DNA of 64,000 nucleotides from Mytilus trossulus (taxonomy: Eukaryota), in NCBI RefSeq assembly GCF_036588685.1, contig NC_086381.1, positions 31,496,001 through 31,560,000 on the forward strand. The letters run 5' to 3'. Shown one piece after another: positions 121-59,023 of this stretch (the first letter of the stretch is position 1; every line of letters begins with the position of its first letter). Under the pieces are notes generated by a model. That model was not told where the DNA came from, did no database searches, and was given only the letters and a program-made list of their open reading frames with translations. A program made the position numbers and the translations under genes.

Positions 121-425
121 CTAGGAATTAAATTTCTTGAAGTAATTAAATAATACTTCCTAACATAGAATAACTCGTTCTACAGAATATTTTTATGTTG
201 GAATCTTGTTTGTAGCTTTATTATGTATGTTTTCTTTTACATTTCAATACATTAAGTAAAGATAGGAATGTGATGAACTACGGTAGAATACTTTTTACCA
301 CATTCATATAGCTTCTGTTATAAATGCAAATATTGTAAATTCTGACTTCATATTGTCTTTTCAGAAGAAGTAGTGAGTTATTGATAATTTGTGATGTTTG
401 CAATTATCAATTCTTTTTGGGATTC

Positions 426-510
426 GAGCGTCACTGATAAGTCTTTTCTAGACGAAATGCGCGTCTGGCGTATATACAAAATTTAGTCCTGGCATCTATA
501 ATGAGTTTAT
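426..510 (+). mobile_element. retrozyme fragment with degenerate type I hammerhead
   Basis: cgtca-CTGATAA-gtct..agac-GAAA-tgcgcg-TC-tggcg; core G8 changed to A. Confidence 0.75.
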
Positions 511-1200
511 ATATAATAATAGTTACAATTCCTTATATATTAAAAACATCCTTATTCGAATAAAGCCTTGATTGATTCATTGAGTCTTTAAAGTTTAAAT
601 GCGAGTATCTTAAAATTAATGCATATGAAAATAAAGAAATGGAAACGAAAATGAAAAAAATAAGTAGAAGAAATGTTCCACTAAAAAGTCAGTTCAACAA
701 CCTTCATAAGGAAGATTTTACAATACTATTGTCAATGCCCGGTAAATCTTTCTATCTTTAAGAGTTAAGCAGCATCCAAATTGTTTCTTCAAATTATGCA
801 AATGAATTAGTAACTCTATAGTGAATGAAAGACAAACGTTTGAATTGTATCATATGATTTTTTTCAATATTACATCTGTATCAATCCAAGACACCAATAT
901 TATCCCAAGAGATATTCTTGAGACATTGGTTGAAGGTTGATACGGAGCGTTAATTTGAAAAAATCAATATACTTTACACTTTATTATAAACCTCACATGA
1001 GTTTTTTATTTGACACGACGGCAGATAAGGGGTTTGATAAAGCCTTTGTAACCGTGACTGATATTATGACGGATATAAGTTAGTGATTGCAAATAACTTT
1101 CTGGAATATTTCTCCATGACGTTCAGTACAAAGACGGATTCCGATATCATACATTTGTCAGTGACAATTGCAGATACAAGTAACTTATACAATTTAGTAC

Positions 1201-1278
1201 CTGTCCACTGTATTTTATCCGTTATTACAAGTTCATCAGTTGATCTATCATATGTACCAATTTCTTTTAATTTCTTAT
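1201..1278 (-). CDS. GABBR2: GABA-B receptor subunit 2-like, coding exon 9
   Basis: TTTAG|(D)KKLKEIGTYDRSTDELVITDKIQWT-G|GTACTA, 78 bp, phase 1-1, matches flanking exons. Confidence 0.82.
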
Positions 1279-3672
1279 CTAAAAATACAAGTTCATAAAT
1301 TTAAGAATCTACCAACTATATAAAACAAGTAAGATAATGTGTTTTTACAATGAATAATACAAGAAGCCGAGTCCATCTTAAAAATCGACAGCAGGGTAAA
1401 GTAAAACGTTTCCTAAAAGCATTATATATCATATAAAAACTAGCCTCGATTTGTTTTATGTATATGTTGGCAAATCTTAAACATCAAATGATAATAACTA
1501 AAAACATGCTACTAAGGTTTAATAATTTTTCTTGTTCTAGAGAATTGAAAGAAGTATGTTCGGTAAAGGTCATAATTGGCCCCGATTATAAAATTGAATG
1601 ATACAAGATAAAATGTGTTTTAAGTTGTGTTAAAGACACGCGAGAAAGTTTTGTTCCAAACGTTGATTTCTACATCCCAAATAGGTAAAAATAAGAGATT
1701 TTGAAGAATTTAACAAAATTGACCAGGAAACACAGAGCCCAGGCTTCGACAAACTAAATATTCAAGTTGATCATGAAGAATGCCATTAGAAACATTGTGT
1801 TCAAAGATCATGTTTGTCGACGTATGCGCTCTATGTTTCCTGTCCAATAATCAATTAGCAATTTTACCTGACCATATCGGGAAATAGGTATTTAGTCGGA
1901 TCTTAACACGTACTTGTGATTTGGTTAAACAGGTTTTGTTATAAATATGCGGCGAAATGTCGAAATGTTCAGAACTTAATTTAATCCGTATTTCGGTAGG
2001 ATGGTGCAAGCATACGATTTTTATTGCTTCTTACACTTTGAGAAGCGAATAATCTTTAAACTACTTTATTTAAATATTGTGTAAAAACATTGATTTTGAG
2101 CTTTGAAAGTCAAGTGACTCGATCATTTTCCTGAGATAGTTTTACAAAATTGCAAAGAAATATTTTTACAGTGGGTTAGCTTTTATTAGTCTTCACTAAC
2201 TATAGATTAACAACTTCTGGTTATATTTATAATTTTGAATCATCATTGAAGGTGGAGCACGATTGCGCAGTTAATCAATTCTATTGATGTGCCATTTGTA
2301 TGCAAGAGTGACATTCCGTTGTATTATGTGCCAATTCTAAAAAGTTATGCGAGTATTCTCTCCCCTTAACAGGTTAATTATTTTATAATTAAGTTTACGT
2401 TTCTAAAATAATTATGAATAATTACAAAATGTTTACATGCATATATTTTAGTTTTTGTTATTGGTGTTTCAAAAACATTGCTGTACGAATATAATTTCAT
2501 AAATTTGAAACGTTTAAAATGATTACATACCAATATAAAGTACCGTTCATCATTTTTGAAAAAGACTATGGACGAAATTTGAATAAATTATCTTCTCTTG
2601 ATGATGGATTGATTGGCAAATGAACCAGCGTTATCTAATGGTAATCACAGAAAGGGACCGGCGAGCTATTGTTAATTGTAGCTTATTCAACCTTAAACCA
2701 ATGTTCCACTATAAACAAATGTTACTTTATTTAAATATAAGGACTTAGTTAGCTAAATCTCCTTCTTTTTTTTTTTAGATATTATGATTTTTTATTGCAA
2801 TAGATTAATATGCTAAATCAATGCACGTTTTACCAATTTTCATTGAAAATAAAAATGATTACTGTTTATTACGTCATCAGAAGAAGGCAGGATGGTAAAT
2901 TGTTAAAAAAAAAAGCTTGTTTCCTATATAGTCAATACATTATCTATGATTTATTGTGATATTGGTCAATAAAGCCTAATTTGAAATTTAAGGTAAAAAC
3001 GATTGCCATTTAAGGGCCTTATCGAACATACTCCTTTCTTGTGCATACCATTTCTATTTTCTAGATGAGATGCCTCAGTTTTGTTTCTGGCTTTAAATAC
3101 AAATGCAAACTTAAGTGTATGTGACAGGTCATAAAACTGCTCTATAGGATCTATAATCGCTCAATTTACCATCGTGTCAAAGTGGATACAATATACATTC
3201 CGATGATTAGACAATTCCTGCGAGTCATTAGGTAACTGCTTAATGCATTTAGCATTATTGGACAATTTGATGTAATGTGCCTTCACGTCTGATTATTTGT
3301 TGATAACCTTGGTATAATCTAGTGGTTTTAGTCATTTTCTGGATTAAAAAATGTATACAACCCATTGCTTCCTAAATAAGTACATTTAGTTATTTTCTAA
3401 CAAATTGTATTGTTTATAGAATATGAACGCATTGACCAAATTGCAGAATATGTTTTTCGTTTACATGGTATATTATATGGCTTGTGAAAGATGATAGGAA
3501 TTTGAACTGATAATATTAAAAGCACACGATTATAATTTCGGATTTTAAGACTTTGAGTAATGCCCTTTGCTAAATATAACTAAGATCTTTATACATTCAG
3601 GGCTCGGACATGATAAATGGATTTGAATACTTCCCATGTTCAAAAATCAGTTATCTAGTCGTTGATTTTACA

Positions 3673-3719
3673 AACCTACGATTTTACCAACCTACGATTT
3701 TACCAACCTACGATTTTAC
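3673..3719 (+). repeat. 16-bp tandem repeat x3 (aacctacgattttacc)
   Basis: direct inspection. Confidence 0.85.
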
Positions 3720-4446
3720 TCTATCACTCGTACCAAGTTCCCTATTACACAATCATCAAATGAGTATATAAATGTTGATGCAATTATGCACTTCACAATT
3801 TGATATTAAACAAAGGGAAACGCGATGACCGATGCATCCGTAAACAGTCAAACTTTTTAACGTGTGACAAACAAAGTACATGCAAGTTCATTTTGTATAA
3901 CTTTGGTAAAAAATCATACATTTATTCATTATATACGTAAAACGATGTACTTGGTCATTTTTGCGATATGGTCGAGACGACCACGCTATATGAAGACAAT
4001 TATGTTACCAAAAAGACTACGAAAAGGCCCGTTTTTATTGACTTTGACACAGTCATTATTGTTAAGCGTTGAAGGTCAAATAATATGAAAATCAATCTGC
4101 ATTACAAATGAAACTGCATCATATCAGTTGCAATACGCTAAGTTGATTGGATAGTACTACCATACATTCTATATTGTTCCATTTACACACATTTTAAAAT
4201 GTGATACTATATGTTTGATTCTGTTTAAAAGTGAAATAAATGAAAACATTGAACAGTACTTACTGTAAAAACAAATAGAGATAGACAACACTCTCTCTCC
4301 GAATTTTTTTTTTACTAAAAAAAACATGCTTGTTTTGATCGAGAGTAACTTTTCCGATGTGTTCCCTCGGTTGTCGTTTGTAAACCGGATTTGTTTTACT
4401 CAATCGATTTATGTCTGCGGTATATTACTTTTGCCTTTATTCATAC

Positions 4447-25494: not shown

Positions 25495-25862
25495 AAAACT
25501 AGGGGTGATCTCAGGTGCTCCGGAAGGGTAAGCAGATCCTGCTCCACATGCGGCACCCGTCGTGTTGCTTATGTGATTACAAATCCGGTAAATAGTCTAA
25601 TTCTGTAGGTCAAATTCATGAAAGGGAAGGGGATTGTAGTTACGAAATAAGGAACATATCCGATATCATTTGTGAAACGGTTATTCCATAACAGTCAACC
25701 AACTCGTGATGGCGTCCGTTAAATTAACGAAGGGGTGATTTCAATTTCACCATTTGGAACTCTTGGTTTAATAGCTTCCTTGTGAGCAGTAACCCTCTAT
25801 CAAGAAAATCATGATAGGAAATGCAAGCACGGGAATATCGTATCAATTGGGAGATATATACC
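25495..25862 (-). mobile_element. Penelope-like element family 2, 3' fragment with RT C-terminus
   Basis: minus-strand GVYISQLIRYSRACISYHDFLDRGLLLTRKLLNQEF..., homologous to GVYISQLVRFGRVC...KLLHQGF in the 55807-57123 RT; second copy at 49000-50060. Confidence 0.8.
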
Positions 25863-36300: not shown

Positions 36301-37539
36301 TGTGACTTTCAAAAAGAGAGAAAATGCCAAAGGTCAATATAAAAATAAGTTATGTTTGAAAAAGCCAGACAAAACCATTCATAAATAAACAGGCACTAGT
36401 AAACGACGAAAACAAACACAACAAAAGCTGGCGCTCAGGGTTCTTTGTGATATTTTTACGAGATTTGTTCGAGATCACCCTGTTATTTTGGATTCGTGTT
36501 GCTCAGCCTTTTAATCGTTTTCTATGCTGTGTATTGTCTTCTGTTGCTTTTTTAATATCTCTTTTTGTTTTGCAGCGTCCTTGTTAGTTTTTTTTCGACT
36601 TAACTTTTAATCAATACGAATCCAGAGCATATGGAAAAAAGACTATTATAATTCTAATATTCAATAGAACTTAAACACAAGGGCATTTACTTCCTAAATG
36701 ATTGTTGATTTTGTGACACAAAAAGTGCGTCTCACTGAGGAAAATATTTTCGATTTTTTAACATCCACCTCGAGCGAATCCATAACTTAAATGCAATTTA
36801 GTGGCTCAAGCATGATGACTGAGTAATAGCTTCTATGTTTTAATCAGAAATGAAACATAGCGGAAGTAATTGTCGAAAATGTTATCTAATGTACTGCAGT
36901 AAAATAAAATTTTAAGCAAGATTATGTTGTTTTTCTAAAAATTGTCCAGAACGGTTAATCTTAGTTCTTCTAAATAAATTATGGAAAAAAATTAGATAAT
37001 GTGATTGTAAGATTGCTTTGAATATGACAAAAAATTATGGTTTTGAGATTTATTGCAAATAAAATCATTCACATTTTGAATAAAACATAAAAATATTACA
37101 TGATAGTCTTATATTCGTTTGCATTTCAAAATCTTAACCAAATTCAAAACATAGTGGATGGTTCCTGCTTATTCTATTTAAATAACAGTAACAATGCAAA
37201 GTGTAAAGTTAGGAAATATACTTTTTTATAACTACAATGTATAGTAAATTTGCCAAGTGAATATTGTATCTTCCAAAAACCAAAATATCACAACAGACGC
37301 AGAAACCAATTTCTTATTCCGAACTTAATATTAGACAATAAAGAAGCCCTTCACGTTTACAATGTAAAATTGAGGATGGAAATGGGGAATGTGCCATGTG
37401 TTTGCTGAAACATTATAATATAATAAACGTAAGCATGCAGCCACATTTTTAAAGTGAGTTAGATAGAGAGTACTAGGTTAATTTTGTGATTTTTTATAAC
37501 GGAATTCTTGTGTTTTAATAACAAGGAATTTAAGTCTTT

Positions 37540-38330
37540 AATTTGACCTGTTGATACTGTATATAATGCTTTCTTGTTATTTTTAATTTATTTGGATCTT
37601 GTCTGTATACCAGCTTTGATTATTTGTAATATCTTCAATTTTCACTTATTCTTACTACATTTGCATAATTTTCAAGATTTTTTTTTTTTTTTTAAACCGG
37701 TTTTTTTCTAAAGTGAATATTGATCAATATTTTCGTAGTGTTAAATATTTCTCAGTGGTGTACATGTCTTGCCATGGCTTTATTTGAACTTGTTTTTTTG
37801 CTAATTGGTCTTGAATGTTTGTCTCATATATTTTATTAACAGTGCATGTGTATTCAGATATCCCAGATCAAATTTATTCGTTCATTGTGTATTAATTTAC
37901 GTTTTTTGATTGGGTTAAGTCTGCCAATTGATATTTTATCGTGTGTTTTTCTATGTTGTGATGTTATGCTATTGTTTCAGAAAAAAAGGAGAAGGTTTGG
38001 ATCCATTAAAACGTTTGATCCCGCTGCAAATGTTTGCACCTGTTCTCAGTCAGTAATCTGATGTACAGTAGTTGTCGTTTGTTTATGTAATATATAAGTG
38101 TTTCTCGTTTCTCGTTTTTTTTTTTTTTAGATTAGACCGTTGGTTTTCCCGTTTGAATGGTTTTACACTAGTAATTTTGGGACCCTTTATAGCTTGTCGT
38201 TCGGTGTGCGCCAAGGCTCCGTGATGAAGGCCGTACATTTACCTATAATGGTTTACTTTTTTTTTTTAATAGTTATTTGGATGGAGAGTTGTCTCATTGG
38301 CACTAACACCACATCTTCCTATATTTGTTA
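37540..38330 (+). mobile_element. interspersed non-autonomous element of unknown class
   Basis: interrupts the similarity between the GPCR1 and GPCR3 3' flanks; ends in the common ggagagttgtctcattggcac..accacatcttcc tail. Confidence 0.55.
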
Positions 38331-49000: not shown

Positions 49001-50060
49001 AAGGGCGACATATACCAGAGAGTCAGTCAAACTCTTAAATCGAAAATAAACTGACAACGCCATGACTAAAAATAAAAAAGACATGACACGGGTTGTGTTC
49101 ATATATGGTATGATGGTATGATACTAAACCCCTAACGGGAGGGATTGTGCCTAATATTCATATGATGAAGACAATCGTTCAATCAATGTAATTGAACTCT
49201 GGAGATTTCAGTTAACTGCTAGTAGTCTTTTGCTATATATCTATAACTGTCATTTTGTTTATTTTCTTTTGTTACATCTTCTGACATCAGACTCGGACTT
49301 CTCTTGAATTGAATTTTAATGTGCGTATTGTTATACATTATTTTTCTACATTAGATAGAGGTAAAGGAGAGGGTTGAGATCTCATAATAAATGTTTAACT
49401 CCGCCGCATTTTTGCGCCTGTCCCCAGTCAGGAGCCTCAGACCTTTGTTAGTCTCGAATTGTTTTTAACTTTAGTTTCTTGTGTATGAATATGAGTTTAG
49501 TATGGCGTTCATTATCACTGAACTAGTATATATATTTATTTAAGGACCAGATAAAGGACGCCTCCTGGTGTGGGAATTTCTCGTTGCATTGAAGACCTAT
49601 TGGTGACCTTATGTTGTTGTCTGTTATATGGTCGGGTTGTTGTCTCTTTGAAACATTCTACGTTTCCATTTTCAATTTCAAACAATAGTACATATGAAAC
49701 AACAAAGAAAACTAAAGACTAAGCAACACGAACACCACCAAAAGCTTGGATTGATCTCAGGTGCTCCGGAAGCGTAAGCAGATCCTGCTCCACATGTGGC
49801 ACCCATCGTGTTGCTCATGTTATTACAAATCCGGTAAAAGTCAAATTATGTAGGTCACATTCATGAAATGGAAAGGGATTTTAGTTACGACGTAAGGAAC
49901 GTATCCGATTTCATCTGTGAAACGGTTATTCTATAACGGTCAACCAACTTGTGATGGCGTCCGTAAAAGTTACGAAGGGTTGTTTCAATTTCACCATTTG
50001 AAACTCTTGGTTTGATAGATTTTTTATGAGAAGCAACCCTTTATCAATAAAATCATGATA
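49000..50060 (-). mobile_element. PLE family 2 3' fragment, split by a Naiad tail insertion
   Basis: 49745-50060 matches 25500-25815; its tail continues at 49000-49081 and 49680-49745. Confidence 0.75.
49082..49680 (+). mobile_element. 5'-truncated Naiad 3' region with mutated SECIS
   Basis: aligns with 57152-57750; SECIS 3' GA changed to AA at 49153. Confidence 0.88.
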
Positions 50061-53482: not shown

Positions 53483-54043
53483 TGTTTGTTTCTGTTTCAT
53501 AAGATAACTATATTTGATAATATCTTTCAAGTGCACCTTATGAAACAAAAACAACTGTCATTACATACAAAAATAATGATTTAGTCTAATTTAAATACAA
53601 GTGCATCATTTACAAATAATTATATAATTTAAACTTATTACATTGATGGTAACATACCGTGATGTCTATAAAGAGTATGTATCGCCGAACTGACTTGATA
53701 CTACAAGAAAGATCTCTGCAAAAACAATGCTAATATAACTGTGATTATCTTAAAACTGAGTTGGTAATGAAAGATAGGTCTTTGTATTTAAAAGATGGAA
53801 AATTACCTTTATTAAATGAGTTGATCAACATTCCCAAAAATCACTGGACAATGACTTTAATGTGCAAGTATTTTCAATAAACAACAAATATCAGCTTTAC
53901 ATACAAAAAAAAACATATAAATATGTGGTGTCTGTCATGCTTATAAAGCTACCGAGAAGTGTATCATCTTTAAAAGAAAACTGAATTGATTTGACATTTT
54001 CAGCCGAACACATTTATCAATTTTATATAACTTAAATTATTGT

Positions 54044-57000
54044 ATGCTGGTTCATATTCTGGACGCCAATCTTTGCTCCTTTATTATGTCATTCACTAAC
54101 AAAACAATTATGAAACTTAGAAATGGAAAAATACTAAATACTAAACTTGTTCAAAGGGTATCTACACGTCTCAATCTTCAAAATCGGTTATCTAAAAATA
54201 CTACCATCGCTAACATTTTTAACAATAAAAATCGTGGTTACCCTTCTATCGATAAGTGTCATGCCAAATAATGACTTACATGTCCCCGTCTTTCCACCAA
54301 CAATACGGTAAGGTCCACGTTTAATGGTCGCACATTTTCTTTAAATTTTGAAACTGATATAACTTGAAAAACAAACAGTATTATTTATTTACTCACATGA
54401 AACAAACCGGTGTGGTATTCAGTACGTAGGAAAAACTGGAAGAAATTTATCTAAACGCACTCAAGAATATCTGTATCGTTTTAAAAGACCAAATAAATTC
54501 AAAGTATCATTTACCAACACCTTAAGAAGCACAACCATCCTTTTAAATATTTAGCAGTTCAACCTTTAGAAGTAGTAAATAAGCAGCCTGGTGAATCGCA
54601 TTCAAAGTTTGTACGATCACGGAAAATAATTGAATTGAATTGGATTAAAAAATTACAGACAGTTTACCCTCTCGGTCTAAATAATAATATCATGGGAATT
54701 GGTAATATATCTAGAACCAATTCCGTTAACATTTTGGATATAGTTTCTAAAACTGTTCGTAAAAACCGTTCTCACGGTCGTAGAACAAATCGCAATCAAA
54801 GAAAATTTCGGGCCAATCATACCAATATTTCGGACCTAATTTCTATTTCAAAAAACAACGGCAGACATTATCTGTTAACAAAACTCTGTTCGTTGCCGGT
54901 TAATAAGTTAAATAAAATTTTGGAGGATTGCAACACAATTTCATATAGCAGTCCTAAGTATGAAATTGTTCAAATTATTATGGCATATTGTTATTCCAAA
55001 TTATTTCCAAAAATTGATCGCCCTGAAGATCATAAAAAACATTTTATTAAAATTAAGTATGTCAATAAAGGCTTTGATTTTGTATATATTGCCGGTATAT
55101 TTAACGACCATTCTGTTAAAGAACAAATTCCTGGATATTTTGACAATACTGAGCTACCTCTTATTTGTTATATGTACAAGAAATCTACCCGGAAATTTGT
55201 GTTTAATTATAGTCAATTGTGTAAAGATGTTAATATCAGTGAAACTACACCTACTTCATGTAATTGCAGTAATTCCGAATATATTTATGGACCCATTTCC
55301 CATGTTATAACAAGAGATCTTAACATCGTTCAAGACCGAGAGTTAAAATCATTCCTCAGTAAAGGACCTAAATATCGTCCCCCGTCTATTATTAATTGGA
55401 ATGAGTGTCGTAATATCTCCACGACTCACTCCATACTTACTGTATGAAATGGATAAAACGGGAAAAAGTTGACAAAAAATCTTTGGACTCTTTTTATAAT
55501 TCAGTAATGAAGATAGTTGATATACGTATTCAACATTTTAAAGAACATTTTACTATTAACAATAACCACAATAAACCTATTTCTCGTATCAAACATAAAC
55601 TAAAAGAACTAGCCAAGGAATTTGTTTTTGTCCCGGCCGATAAAGCTGCTAATAATATTATTATTGTTTGACGTAAATTTTACATTGAGGTTCTGAAACA
55701 GGAAATCACCATTTCACCAACATTCAAACTGACTCCATTTTCAGAAAACGAAATCTGTAACAAACATAAACTTTTAGCCACCGCTTTACAGGCAGAGCCA
55801 AATACAATGAAAGTCCCAACTATGTATTGGCTTCCGAAGCTACACAAAACCCCTTACAAATATAGATTTATTTCGTCTTCAAGCCATTGTTCAACTACTA
55901 AATTGTCTATTCTTCTTACCAGCACACTTGGTACAATTAAAAACCTTATAATAAATTGTTCAAATAAGGCCTTCGAAAATAGTGGAATAAATTACTTTTG
56001 GAGTGTCAAGAACTCGTTGGAAGTACTTGATAAATTGCATGCTTATATTGGTGATTTTGAATCTGTTCAAAGTTTTGATTTTTCTACCCTGTATACCATG
56101 TATACCACATTGCCTCACATTCTCATTAAGAAAATAATCACACACCTAATTAAATGGGCATTCAAAAAATCAGAATGTGAATATATATGTTCAAACTCTT
56201 TTAGGTCATTTTTTAGTAGCAATAAACAAAAAAACTATGTTAATTGGACATGCTTTGATACTATATATGCCCTTGAATTTTTACTAGATAACATTTTTGT
56301 TCGCTTTGGGGATTCCGTATATCGTCAGATTATCGGAATTCCAATGGGGACTAACTGTGTACCACTTATTGCGGACCTCTTTTTGTATTGTTATGAGTTA
56401 CAATTTATGACAAAAATAAGCAAAGACCCATCAAAACAACATCTGATAAACACAATTAATAATACTTTTAGATATTTGGATGATATTTTGGCTCTCAATA
56501 ATGACGACTTCAGTTTGTATATTAATGAAATTTATCCTGCTGAACTTACTTTAAATAAAGCTAATACTAACAATGACCACTGCCCTTTCCTCGATCTTGA
56601 TATCTATATCACTAACGGAAAGCTGAATACTAAAATTTATGATAAAAAGGATGATTTTTCATTTCCTATTGTTAATTATCCGTTTTTAGATGGTGACGTT
56701 CCCTTGTCACCATCTTACGGTGTTTATATATCTCAACTTGTACGATTCGGTCGTGTATGTAACAATGTTTTAGATTTTAACGAGAGAAATTTATGTATTA
56801 CTGATAAATTATTACACCAGGGTTTTCGATATCACAAACTAGTCAAAACATTTACTACATTTTATCATCGATATAAAGACATCATTCGTAAATATAGCTC
56901 AACATGCAGACTTCTTATACGTTCAGGTATTTCACATCCAATTTTTTATGGAAATATTCTGTATAAAGCACAAAGGTGTCAGTATTCACCTCAGAAACTT

Positions 57001-57123
57001 ACAAAACCTTTGAATAGACTTATTAAGAAGGGATATAATTACAATACTGTTGTCAAGTCATTAAAGATTGCATATTTTGGCGTTAATATTGAGTCACTGA
57101 TAAGGTCTTTGCGTCGGAACTAA
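54044..57123 (+). pseudogene. Naiad EN-RT polyprotein ORF with four Sec (TGA) codons, one TAA and three frameshifts
   Basis: ORF pieces 54044-54271, 54272-54634, 54635-55420, 55444-55671 and 55672-57123 join into one protein; lesions: TAA 54269, frameshifts ~54410, ~54504, ~55418, 9-bp duplication ~56090. Confidence 0.85.
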
Positions 57124-57173
57124 ACACATTTATTCTAAAAACAGTTGTTGGCATGACACGGGTTATGTTCTTC

Positions 57174-57240
57174 TCATATATGTTATGATGGTATGATACC
57201 AAACCCCTAACGGGAAGGATTGTGCCTGATGTTCATATGA
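57174..57240 (+). promoter_or_regulatory. SECIS element (type 2)
   Basis: tcatat..ATGAt-ggtatgatacc-AAA-ccc ctaac ggg-aa-ggattgtgcc-tGAt..atatga; ~50 nt after the ORF stop. Confidence 0.85.
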
Positions 57241-58584
57241 TGAAATCATAATCTTTCAGTCAGTTTAATTGAAGTCTGGAGCTGGCATGTCAGTTAACTG
57301 CTAGTAGTCTGTTGTTATTTATGTATTATTGTCATTTTGTTTATTTTCTTTGGTTACATCTTCTGACATCAGACTCGGACTTCTGAATTTTAATGTGCGT
57401 ATTGTTATGCGTTTACTTTTCTACATTGGTTAGAGGTATAGGGGGAGGGTTGAGATCTCACAAACATGTTTAACCCCGCCGCATTTTTGCGCCTGTCCCC
57501 AGTCAGGAGCCTCTGGCTTTTGTTAGTCTTGTATTATTTTAATTTTAGTTTCTTGTGAACAATTTGGAAATTAGTATGGCGTTCATTATCACTGAACTAT
57601 TATATATTTGTTTGGGGGCCAGCTGAAGGACGCCTCCGGGTGCGGGAATTTCCTGCTACATTGAAGACCTGTTGGTGACCTTCTGCTGTTGTTTTTTATT
57701 TGGTCGGGTTTTGTCTCTTTGACACATTCCCCATTTCCATTCTCAATTTTATTATTATTAAATACGTAAGACAAAGACAAAACATTTATTGAAACATAAA
57801 ATATTTACCGTAATAACTTTTATTAGCCACTTTTATTTAAATTTCCAAATTTAACACAGTTCTGGCTTTTTTCTGTCATACCAGTCAAAACTCGGGATAA
57901 TTGACCTCTTTAACTGATATGCCTTAAGTTGTCACATGCAGAAACAAACTTACTTTTTTACCAACCTTGATAATTCGACAATGTATGCGTCAATAAGATG
58001 TCAACTGAACAAAAATAACGAAAGACAACTAGTGAGTCATATACAATCTTCAACAACTATTAAATCTATATGTATTGTGCATAAATTAAACAGCAACAGA
58101 TCGATATTCAACTCCGATTCCCCCCCCCCCCCCCCCCCAAAAAAAAGTTTTGTTTTTATTAAGATAAAAAAAAAATACGACAGCTAGTGCATTAGAAATC
58201 TGCACCATTCTGATAAATGTGATAATCAAATGTGTAGGATTTATTTTTCAAAGATTTTATCACAAATCTCGGAAAACGGAAACCAGATAAAAGTCGTATA
58301 AAACTCTGGCCTTTACATAACATTCTGATTGCTAACGAAATCAGATTAAATTTCATATTCAGAAATGACTTAAAAAACAGGAAACAGGAAAATATGTCAA
58401 AAGTTATCCAAATCTAAGATTGTTTTGTCAATGTTTACCAAATATGTGCAGCGTATAAATATTCAATGAATCTCATTGAAACAATATTTAGGATAAATAT
58501 TAAAGTCAAAAGCTTTGTTCTACAAAATCAATCAAAATTTGAGTAGTAAATATAAATGTGACGTTTCAGTCAAATCTTCAGTTG

Positions 58585-59023
58585 ACTGAGCGTCACTGAT
58601 GAGTCTTATGTTGACGAAACGCGCGTCTGACGTACCTAAAATATAATCATGGTACTATTTACACAACTGGGTCGATGCCACTGCAAGTGGACGTTTCGTC
58701 CTCGATGGTATCATCAGCCCAGTAGTCAACACTTCGGTTTTGACATGAATATCAAATATGTGTTCATTTTTATAAATTTCCTGTTTACAAAACCTGAATT
58801 TTTATTTCGTAAAACTAAGGATTTTTGTTTGTCCTAGGCAAGATTACATTAGCCGTATTTAGTATAACTTTGGGGAATTTCGGATCCTCAATGGTCTTCA
58901 ACTTTGTACTTGTTTAACTTTATAACTATTTTGAGATGAGCATCACTGGTGAGTCTTATGTAGACGAAACGTTCATCTGGCGTACTAAATTATAATCCTG
59001 GTACTTTTGATACCATAACTATT
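58585..59023 (+). mobile_element. retrozyme: complete 350-nt monomer bounded by two type I hammerheads
   Basis: HHR1 at 58591-58632 (intact CTGATGA/GAAA/GTC, cleavage after 58627); HHR2 at 58941-58982 (CTGGTGA, mutated); spacing exactly 350 nt. Confidence 0.88.

Follow-up and report, generated by a model that had tools for sequence, protein, structure and literature searches.

Craig et al. (2021; PMC8557442) described selenoprotein Naiads, which are Penelope-like elements (PLEs), from two clam and two spider species. These elements carry three or four UGA codons and a selenocysteine insertion sequence (SECIS), and Craig et al. called them the first selenoprotein-encoding transposons. Full-text literature searches did not find a later paper on selenoprotein-encoding transposons. 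Here, we examine a PLE of this kind in the mussel Mytilus trossulus, located at 53990-57753 on the plus strand of a 64,000-nucleotide stretch of contig NC_086381.1 (positions 31,496,001 to 31,560,000; assembly GCF_036588685.1). This whole stretch is referred to below as the window, and its positions are numbered from its first letter. The element is very probably a dead, 5′-truncated copy of a young, high-copy Naiad-clade family (family 1), whose intact copies read four UGAs as selenocysteine (Sec). A preliminary description of the locus had assigned it to a known class, that of Naiad PLEs some of which are selenoproteins, in agreement with Craig et al., and had suggested that the family may be uncatalogued. 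The latter is plausible, because NCBI calls a fragment of a sister family just ‘uncharacterized protein’ and the Sec pattern differs from that of the four published families.

A DNA search of the 1.3 Gb genome gave 4577 first-look candidates for family 1, of which the 40 that were scored are ~98% identical. Each natural copy was read individually, TAA and TAG being the only codons taken as stops, and the copies were tallied without the use of a consensus. In 23 of the 29 other copies, there is a single 1008-codon frame free of TAA and TAG (1002 codons if counted from its first ATG), interrupted by exactly four TGAs whose positions are the same in each of these copies. These natural copies thus individually have the form that the preliminary description expected of a genomic consensus, namely one open reading frame (ORF) of ~1000 codons broken only by the four TGAs. 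The same description had reasoned that TGY or random stops in other copies, or homologues lacking Cys, would speak against it; instead, a multiple alignment has TGA at each of the four sites in 30/30 copies, and the homologues carry Cys (see below). The other copies are 99.43% identical among themselves. Among 100 further scored copies, a clean frame of 424 codons separates the third TGA from the fourth in nearly every case, and all 74 of 74 scored copies have the TGA yet no TAA or TAG in the reverse transcriptase (RT) half. Family 1 is a young, high-copy family of the Naiad clade.

The 424-residue interval between the third and fourth TGAs of a natural copy was used to query a representative protein library, which returned 2756 relatives, many of them full-length (850-1100 residues). 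We then aligned 45 full-length relatives (840-1279 residues) with a natural copy carrying X at each TGA, and family 1 aligns with them from end to end. The preliminary description had placed all four TGAs at Cys positions, and the alignment agrees: among non-gap rows, Cys is found at the column of codon 55 in 34/34, of codon 86 in 40/40, of codon 97 in 41/41 and of codon 522 in 45/45. Over the whole protein, nine columns are at least 80% Cys (50, 55, 58, 86, 97, 102, 385, 387 and 522), and the four TGAs fall on four of them. The chance that four random stops would land on four of nine such columns among ~1000 is of the order of 1e-8.

The sites can be placed within the Naiad motifs defined in PMC8557442 (CX2-5CxxC, CCHH, CxC, GxKF/Y and DKA). 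Codon 55 (54272-54274) is the second Cys of the zinc-finger-like CX4CxxC linker motif (C50-x4-U55-xx-C58, with U at the TGA); the preliminary description was right that a Cys is replaced here, and its reading as the first Cys of a CxxC is amended. Codon 86 (54365-54367) is the Cys immediately preceding the GIY motif. Codon 97 (54398-54400) does lie between GIY and YIG, as described (YVG in this family), and can now be specified as the first Cys of the CCHH finger, which is read from its two Cys (U97-x4-C102). Both finger motifs stand on near-invariant Cys columns. Codon 522 (55669-55671) is the Cys eight residues past DKA, at the RT N-terminus. All four assignments draw on the other copies, the homologues and a second mussel family (family 2; see below). 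The SIIY (GIY) and YVGET motifs are found at codons 90-110, while C385-N-C387 (CxC), KGPKYRPP and PADKAANN (DKA, not DKG) are located between the endonuclease (EN) and the RT or at the start of the latter, and YLDD lies in the C-terminal half. A profile of the relatives matches the I-TevI GIY-YIG domain at the N-terminus and group II intron RT at positions 741-809, and the Pfam GIY-YIG domain scores above cut-off in two relatives, P0129 and P0131.

Family 2 surfaced in a genome search with a diverged relative and is represented by eight loci, five of which have a 1003-codon frame free of TAA and TAG with five TGAs. In a pairwise codon alignment, the two families share 62.9% protein and 65% nucleotide identity; the proportion of synonymous differences (pS) is 0.78, i.e. 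saturated, that of nonsynonymous differences (pN) is 0.24, and the ratio of nonsynonymous to synonymous substitution rates (dN/dS) is ~0.15 where computable. All four family 1 TGAs pair with a TGA in family 2, and the fifth TGA of family 2 stands opposite a family 1 TGT (Cys385), where the CxC motif has its first Cys. Among the members of the 90%-identity cluster to which the family 2 RT fragment belongs are ‘uncharacterized protein’ entries from Mytilus edulis and Mytilus californianus.

The frame of family 1 ends at a TAA (57121-57123 in the window; TAA in 29/30 copies), and a SECIS had been reported to follow this stop. A full-length match to the Rfam model SECIS_1, with an AUGA / AAA / GA core, is found at 57175-57239 on the plus strand and begins 51 nt past the TAA, in the 3′ untranslated region (UTR). 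At 30.7 bits, this match falls short of the gathering score of 35 (E = 0.0037; 5 kb, both strands and 4227 Rfam families). The score is 32.8 bits in other family 1 copies, and the window SECIS folds better than its shuffled versions (z = -2.2). Family 2 likewise has a full-length SECIS_1 match, 135 nt past its TAA, of 28.4 bits (E = 0.0019 on 601 nt). When the two are compared through their cmscan alignments, both partners differ in four of the five helix I pairs, and in helix II both partners differ in two pairs and a single partner in four; 15 of 15 pairs of the family 2 SECIS are nevertheless standard, and its core is unchanged relative to family 1. The TGAs and the SECIS alike are kept by purifying selection. 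Untranslated stops and an idle hairpin would not survive such divergence, which makes family 2 the strongest argument for recoding. A DNA search of the genome with the SECIS gave 116 first-look candidates, a figure that is not a copy number as common words were skipped.

The host genome encodes tRNA-Sec, with two matches (79.6 and 77 bits; cut-off 47). Each unit of two long tandem arrays, at C10:63843916-63855579 and C10:64461689-64492367 (periods of 891 and 900 bp), has a tRNA-like gene of 81 nt, whose score with the tRNA-Sec model is 45.9 bits (cut-off 47) and which is probably another tRNA. The same genome also contains Cys-type Naiads with frames of 1056 and 1000 residues and no stops over the same columns (e.g. 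C13:53372553-53375303 and C58:65663-68344), some of which are arranged in tandem, ~4.2 kb or 3.4 kb apart. Since these stop-free families coexist with family 1, neither a genome-wide reassignment of TGA nor an assembly artefact accounts for the TGAs. Both possibilities were considered separately and rejected: sequencing or assembly error because 30/30 copies and the RNA agree, and genome-wide reassignment because ORFs end normally and the Cys-type families are without TGA.

The family is present in RNA libraries. Reads from two RNA sequencing runs of 2026 cover only ~54004-57753 of the locus and none of its flanks, with loose ends at 57751-57755. The depth climbs from ~10 to ~500 in the 3′ direction, with reads on both strands. 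This pattern fits a family dominated by 5′-truncated copies; because of the two-strand coverage and the 3′ skew (~50-fold), it is no proof of the element's own mRNA, and such a transcript cannot be demonstrated from these reads. The reads require the same lesion corrections at the same places in the window copy as do the genomic copies. More widely, the element is present in runs of four organism labels from 12 studies (six RNA). Per run, ~100 and ~1000 RNA reads join the element from unlike sequence at 57383 and 57711, respectively. The final ~370 bp and ~40 bp of the 3′ UTR therefore also belong to other repeat families that are more abundant, and these may be non-autonomous partners using the same tail. 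As to the bias of Naiads for insertion at (TA)n or other microsatellites, the observations cover the sequences past the 3′ end of the element, which are varied and A/T-rich in the reads, and the 3′ flank in the window, which begins ATTATTATT.

Our proposed model is as follows. A single mRNA of an intact copy would carry one ORF of 1002 codons, encoding an N-terminal GIY-YIG EN with two zinc-finger-like motifs, the CxC linker and the RT, in which UGA codons 55, 86, 97 and 522 would stand in for otherwise invariant Cys. The SECIS stem-loop 51 nt past the UAA would recruit the Sec machinery of the host, with SBP2 and eEFSec decoding the four UGAs as Sec. The Sec residues of the two fingers and those close to the RT N-terminus may serve as metal ligands or be redox-active, and the protein would insert new copies by target-primed reverse transcription, giving rise to many 5′-truncated copies and to partial tandems (pseudo-long terminal repeats; pLTRs). 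How much such an element can produce would depend on the supply of selenium and be held down by inefficient multi-UGA decoding. The preliminary description had similarly envisaged Sec as a zinc ligand of the EN and transposition as dependent on host selenium status.

Several points weigh against Sec decoding in family 1. The case for Sec insertion is built from sequence. Three of the UGAs are within 43 codons, ~3 kb from the SECIS, an arrangement for which inefficient decoding is expected. The SECIS matches, at 28-33 bits, are all under the Rfam gathering score of 35, and a Pfam search with family 1's own pieces gave no match. Furthermore, the 30 copies compared are the best matches and carry a selection bias, while the RNA reads may come largely from truncated copies within host transcripts rather than from element mRNA.

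It is improbable that the UGAs are read by near-cognate read-through (as Trp, Cys or Arg) or by some other form of recoding. Such an explanation draws on the indirect nature of the case for Sec, and on the fact that decoding of many UGAs far from a single SECIS is normally inefficient. However, it leaves aside that the AUGA/AAA/GA-core SECIS is found in the 3′ UTR of both families despite ~35% nucleotide divergence and the turnover of helix I, that the TGAs specifically replace Cys, the signature of Sec/Cys exchange, and that the host has a tRNA-Sec; moreover, many UGAs are reportedly decoded in bivalve SelenoP (cited in PMC8557442). Still less probable is that the TGAs are genuine stops in a lineage that is non-autonomous or dead and for which Cys-type Naiads act in trans, with a fortuitous SECIS-like hairpin. 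In this case, one would have to account for 1008 codons that stay free of TAA and TAG downstream of every TGA despite the AT-rich DNA, for the conservation of all four TGAs between synonymously saturated families at a dN/dS of ~0.15, for stops that occur on invariant Cys columns only, and for a SECIS structure maintained by compensatory changes. Cys-type Naiads with uninterrupted frames of 1000-1056 residues do share the genome, the SECIS scores are under threshold, and translation is beyond proof by sequence alone; these are the observations that speak for genuine stops. Finally, it is hardly credible that the five segments are made as separate polypeptides by reinitiation, with the EN pieces apart from the RT: gene callers do yield separate ORFs, such as a 438-residue RT ORF from ATG 55807, but two of the segments are just 30 and 10 codons long and cut the GIY-YIG core, conserved start codons after the TGAs are absent, and the relatives are one continuous protein with Cys at these points.

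With Sec decoding of intact copies as the preferred reading, the window copy itself is incapable of making the EN-RT protein. When compared by BLAST with a 4023-bp tandem unit of the family, 53990-57753 aligns with unit positions 248-4021, so that the copy is 5′-truncated by ~247 bp, and the upstream pLTR is absent. The preliminary description had recognized the element and given its extent as 54044-57240; the element stands, and the boundaries are replaced by those above. Identity to other family 1 copies is 97.9%, with 93 private differences. The ORF of the family starts at ATG 54110, since other copies close the upstream frame with a TAA at 54089-54091; ATG 54044 is private to the window copy and is an accident of it. 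The EN-RT reading frame accordingly spans 54110-57123 (+; 1002 codons in unbroken copies) and is broken here by several lesions. A private nonsense TAA at 54269-54271 replaces the AAA (Lys) of the family; AAA is present in 27/30 aligned copies, and every RNA read has T>A. Frameshifts are found at 54410 (54409-54411; -2 bases relative to the family), 54500 (54499-54501; -1 base) and 55417 (55416-55418; -1 base), each identified from the RNA reads and the alignment of copies, and the coding path shifts frame three times as a result. The alignment of copies also reveals a private in-frame 9-bp duplication within the RT (56094-56102). Downstream of the SECIS, 57240-57753 is the remaining 3′ UTR and tail, which far exceeds the other parts in abundance in both RNA and DNA and the end of which is common to other repeat families.

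The positions given earlier for the TAA (54269) and the four TGAs (54272, 54365, 54398 and 55669) were all borne out by the sequence and its frames. The first three TGAs share one frame in the window (mod3=2), and the frame of the fourth does read through 45 open codons into the RT ORF at ATG 55807, ending at TAA 57121. Likewise, the genomic copies and RNA reads agree with the earlier diagnosis of a copy damaged by TAA 54269 and three frameshifts.

By self-comparison, three other family 1 loci (L002, L005 and L010) have a partial 3′ copy upstream, i.e. a pLTR, while L007 is a full head-to-tail tandem with a 4023-bp unit. The pLTR copies hold an extra upstream SECIS (L002:595-659 and L005:610-674), and a read-through transcript of such a copy would carry two SECIS, one of them 5′ of the ORF. 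A hammerhead ribozyme was not found inside the element in an Rfam E-value scan of 53500-58500. A type I hammerhead (Hammerhead_1) is present at 58590-58633 (region 58587-58635; 33 bits, where the gathering score is 34; E = 3.7e-6); as it lies ~840 bp downstream, outside of the element, it was rejected as an element part. A second copy, 86% identical, is found 350 bp further at 58937-58985, and together the two resemble a retrozyme-type or tandem repeat. The window element thus has the features of the Naiad clade, namely: a GIY-YIG domain at the N-terminus with an RT; the fingers; the CxC, GxKF/Y and DKA motifs; pLTRs or 5′ truncation; and no internal hammerhead.

Other Naiad remnants are scattered over the window. 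An older, 5′-truncated 3′ fragment of a family 1-like Naiad (49082-49678; 85% identical) holds a decayed SECIS at 49100-49164, which scores 22.5 bits and has a 3′ core of CUAAU vs. CUGAU. A 3′ fragment resembling family 2 (85% identity) is found at 37538-38324, and a short RT remnant with ~40% protein identity at 25658-25861 on the minus strand. In addition, several matches of 30-60 bp to Naiad element tails are dispersed in the window.

For the wider distribution of Sec-like sites, the evidence consists of ORF boundaries rather than codons. Among 270 database relatives, seven end exactly at residue 521 (37-65% identity), ~45 RT proteins start at residues 524-531, and six have Trp at column 522. 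In longer members of the Trp clusters, Trp occupies either the three columns 86, 97 and 522 or the pair 385 and 522, with Cys elsewhere, and near-identical cluster mates of the Trp proteins begin directly past the column. Seven proteins have Trp at the Cys/Sec columns (P0372 and P0374 at 86, 97 and 522; P0330 and P0332 at 385 and 522; P0163 at 86 and 97; and likewise P0099 and P0102) and are otherwise unremarkable. Most simply, the Trp is likely a TGA translated by a metagenome gene caller using a code in which TGA is Trp; gene calls of this type hide selenoprotein transposons.

In a FastTree phylogeny of 122 RT sequences, there is a clade of 117 rows that are mostly Sec-like at column 522. 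Cys rows occur in at least five places, and a minimum of six state changes is needed; Cys is also what P0002-4, which are close to family 1 (74-78% identical), have at this column. The distribution suggests an old Sec state, as judged from ORF ends, with repeated returns to Cys. We tentatively raise the possibility, toward which we lean less than away from it, that Sec at DKA+8, before the GIY motif and in the CCHH finger was ancestral to a large bivalve Naiad radiation, followed by reversions to Cys and by stepwise gains of Sec (codon 55 in both mussel families; CxC in family 2 and another lineage). If true, thousands of selenoprotein genes and SECIS would be dispersed in the mussel genome, forming a mobile reservoir from which host 3′ UTRs might acquire SECIS, or which might draw on the Sec machinery in competition with the host.

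Selenoprotein transposons have been reported once, in four families, and the present locus extends them to mussels, with four and five Sec per protein predicted. The published report was based on consensus sequences; the new argument here is that synonymously saturated families keep their UGAs together with a SECIS whose helices co-vary, so that recoding can hardly be doubted. Annotation pipelines break such elements up into pieces labelled ‘uncharacterized protein’ and miss thousands of SECIS-bearing 3′ ends, which could matter for the evolution of host selenoproteins.

The closest described systems are the clam elements Naiad_Mmer (Mercenaria mercenaria) and Naiad_Scon (Sinonovacula constricta), which are likewise bivalve PLEs with a GIY-YIG domain at the N-terminus and with an RT (PMC8557442) and from which our families were set apart by means of the published descriptions. 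The clam Naiads share the UGA before the GIY motif, that at the first CCHH Cys and that at DKA+8 (codons 86, 97 and 522 here), as well as a SECIS just past the UAA or UAG stop and a high copy number. Unlike them, the present element has a mussel host and an additional UGA at the second Cys of CX2-5CxxC, which in PMC8557442 is found in a spider family only. Conversely, the UGA at RT6(D) in Naiad_Scon has no counterpart in family 1. The fifth UGA of family 2, at the first Cys of CxC, is unreported in PMC8557442 as to both site and count. Furthermore, the family 1 SECIS is aligned in the form that has an additional mini-stem, whereas the clam and spider paper reports type I (PMC8557442). The Stegodyphus elements Naiad_Sdum and Naiad_Smim share Sec in CX2-5CxxC (first, or first and second Cys), before the GIY motif and at DKA+8, and Naiad_Sdum has four Sec, the number predicted for family 1; they differ in a CCHH finger without Sec, in belonging to another phylum and in a reportedly independent origin.

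The Cys-type Naiads (the Mytilus galloprovincialis Naiad of Craig et al. and the 1000- and 1056-residue families found here) have the same domain order, motifs and host genome, but they carry TGY at all of these columns, have no in-frame stops and do not need a SECIS. Among host proteins, the nearest likeness is with Selenoprotein P, which belongs to the small number of proteins in which several UGAs are decoded as Sec via 3′ UTR SECIS, and which is Sec-rich in bivalves (literature cited in PMC8557442). It is, however, an unrelated host protein with mostly C-terminal Sec and two SECIS, whereas the Naiad described here has a single SECIS and three of its UGAs near the N-terminus. Taken together, the kind of element is already known, and what is new is the mussel host, the four and five predicted Sec residues, and two Sec sites unreported for bivalves.

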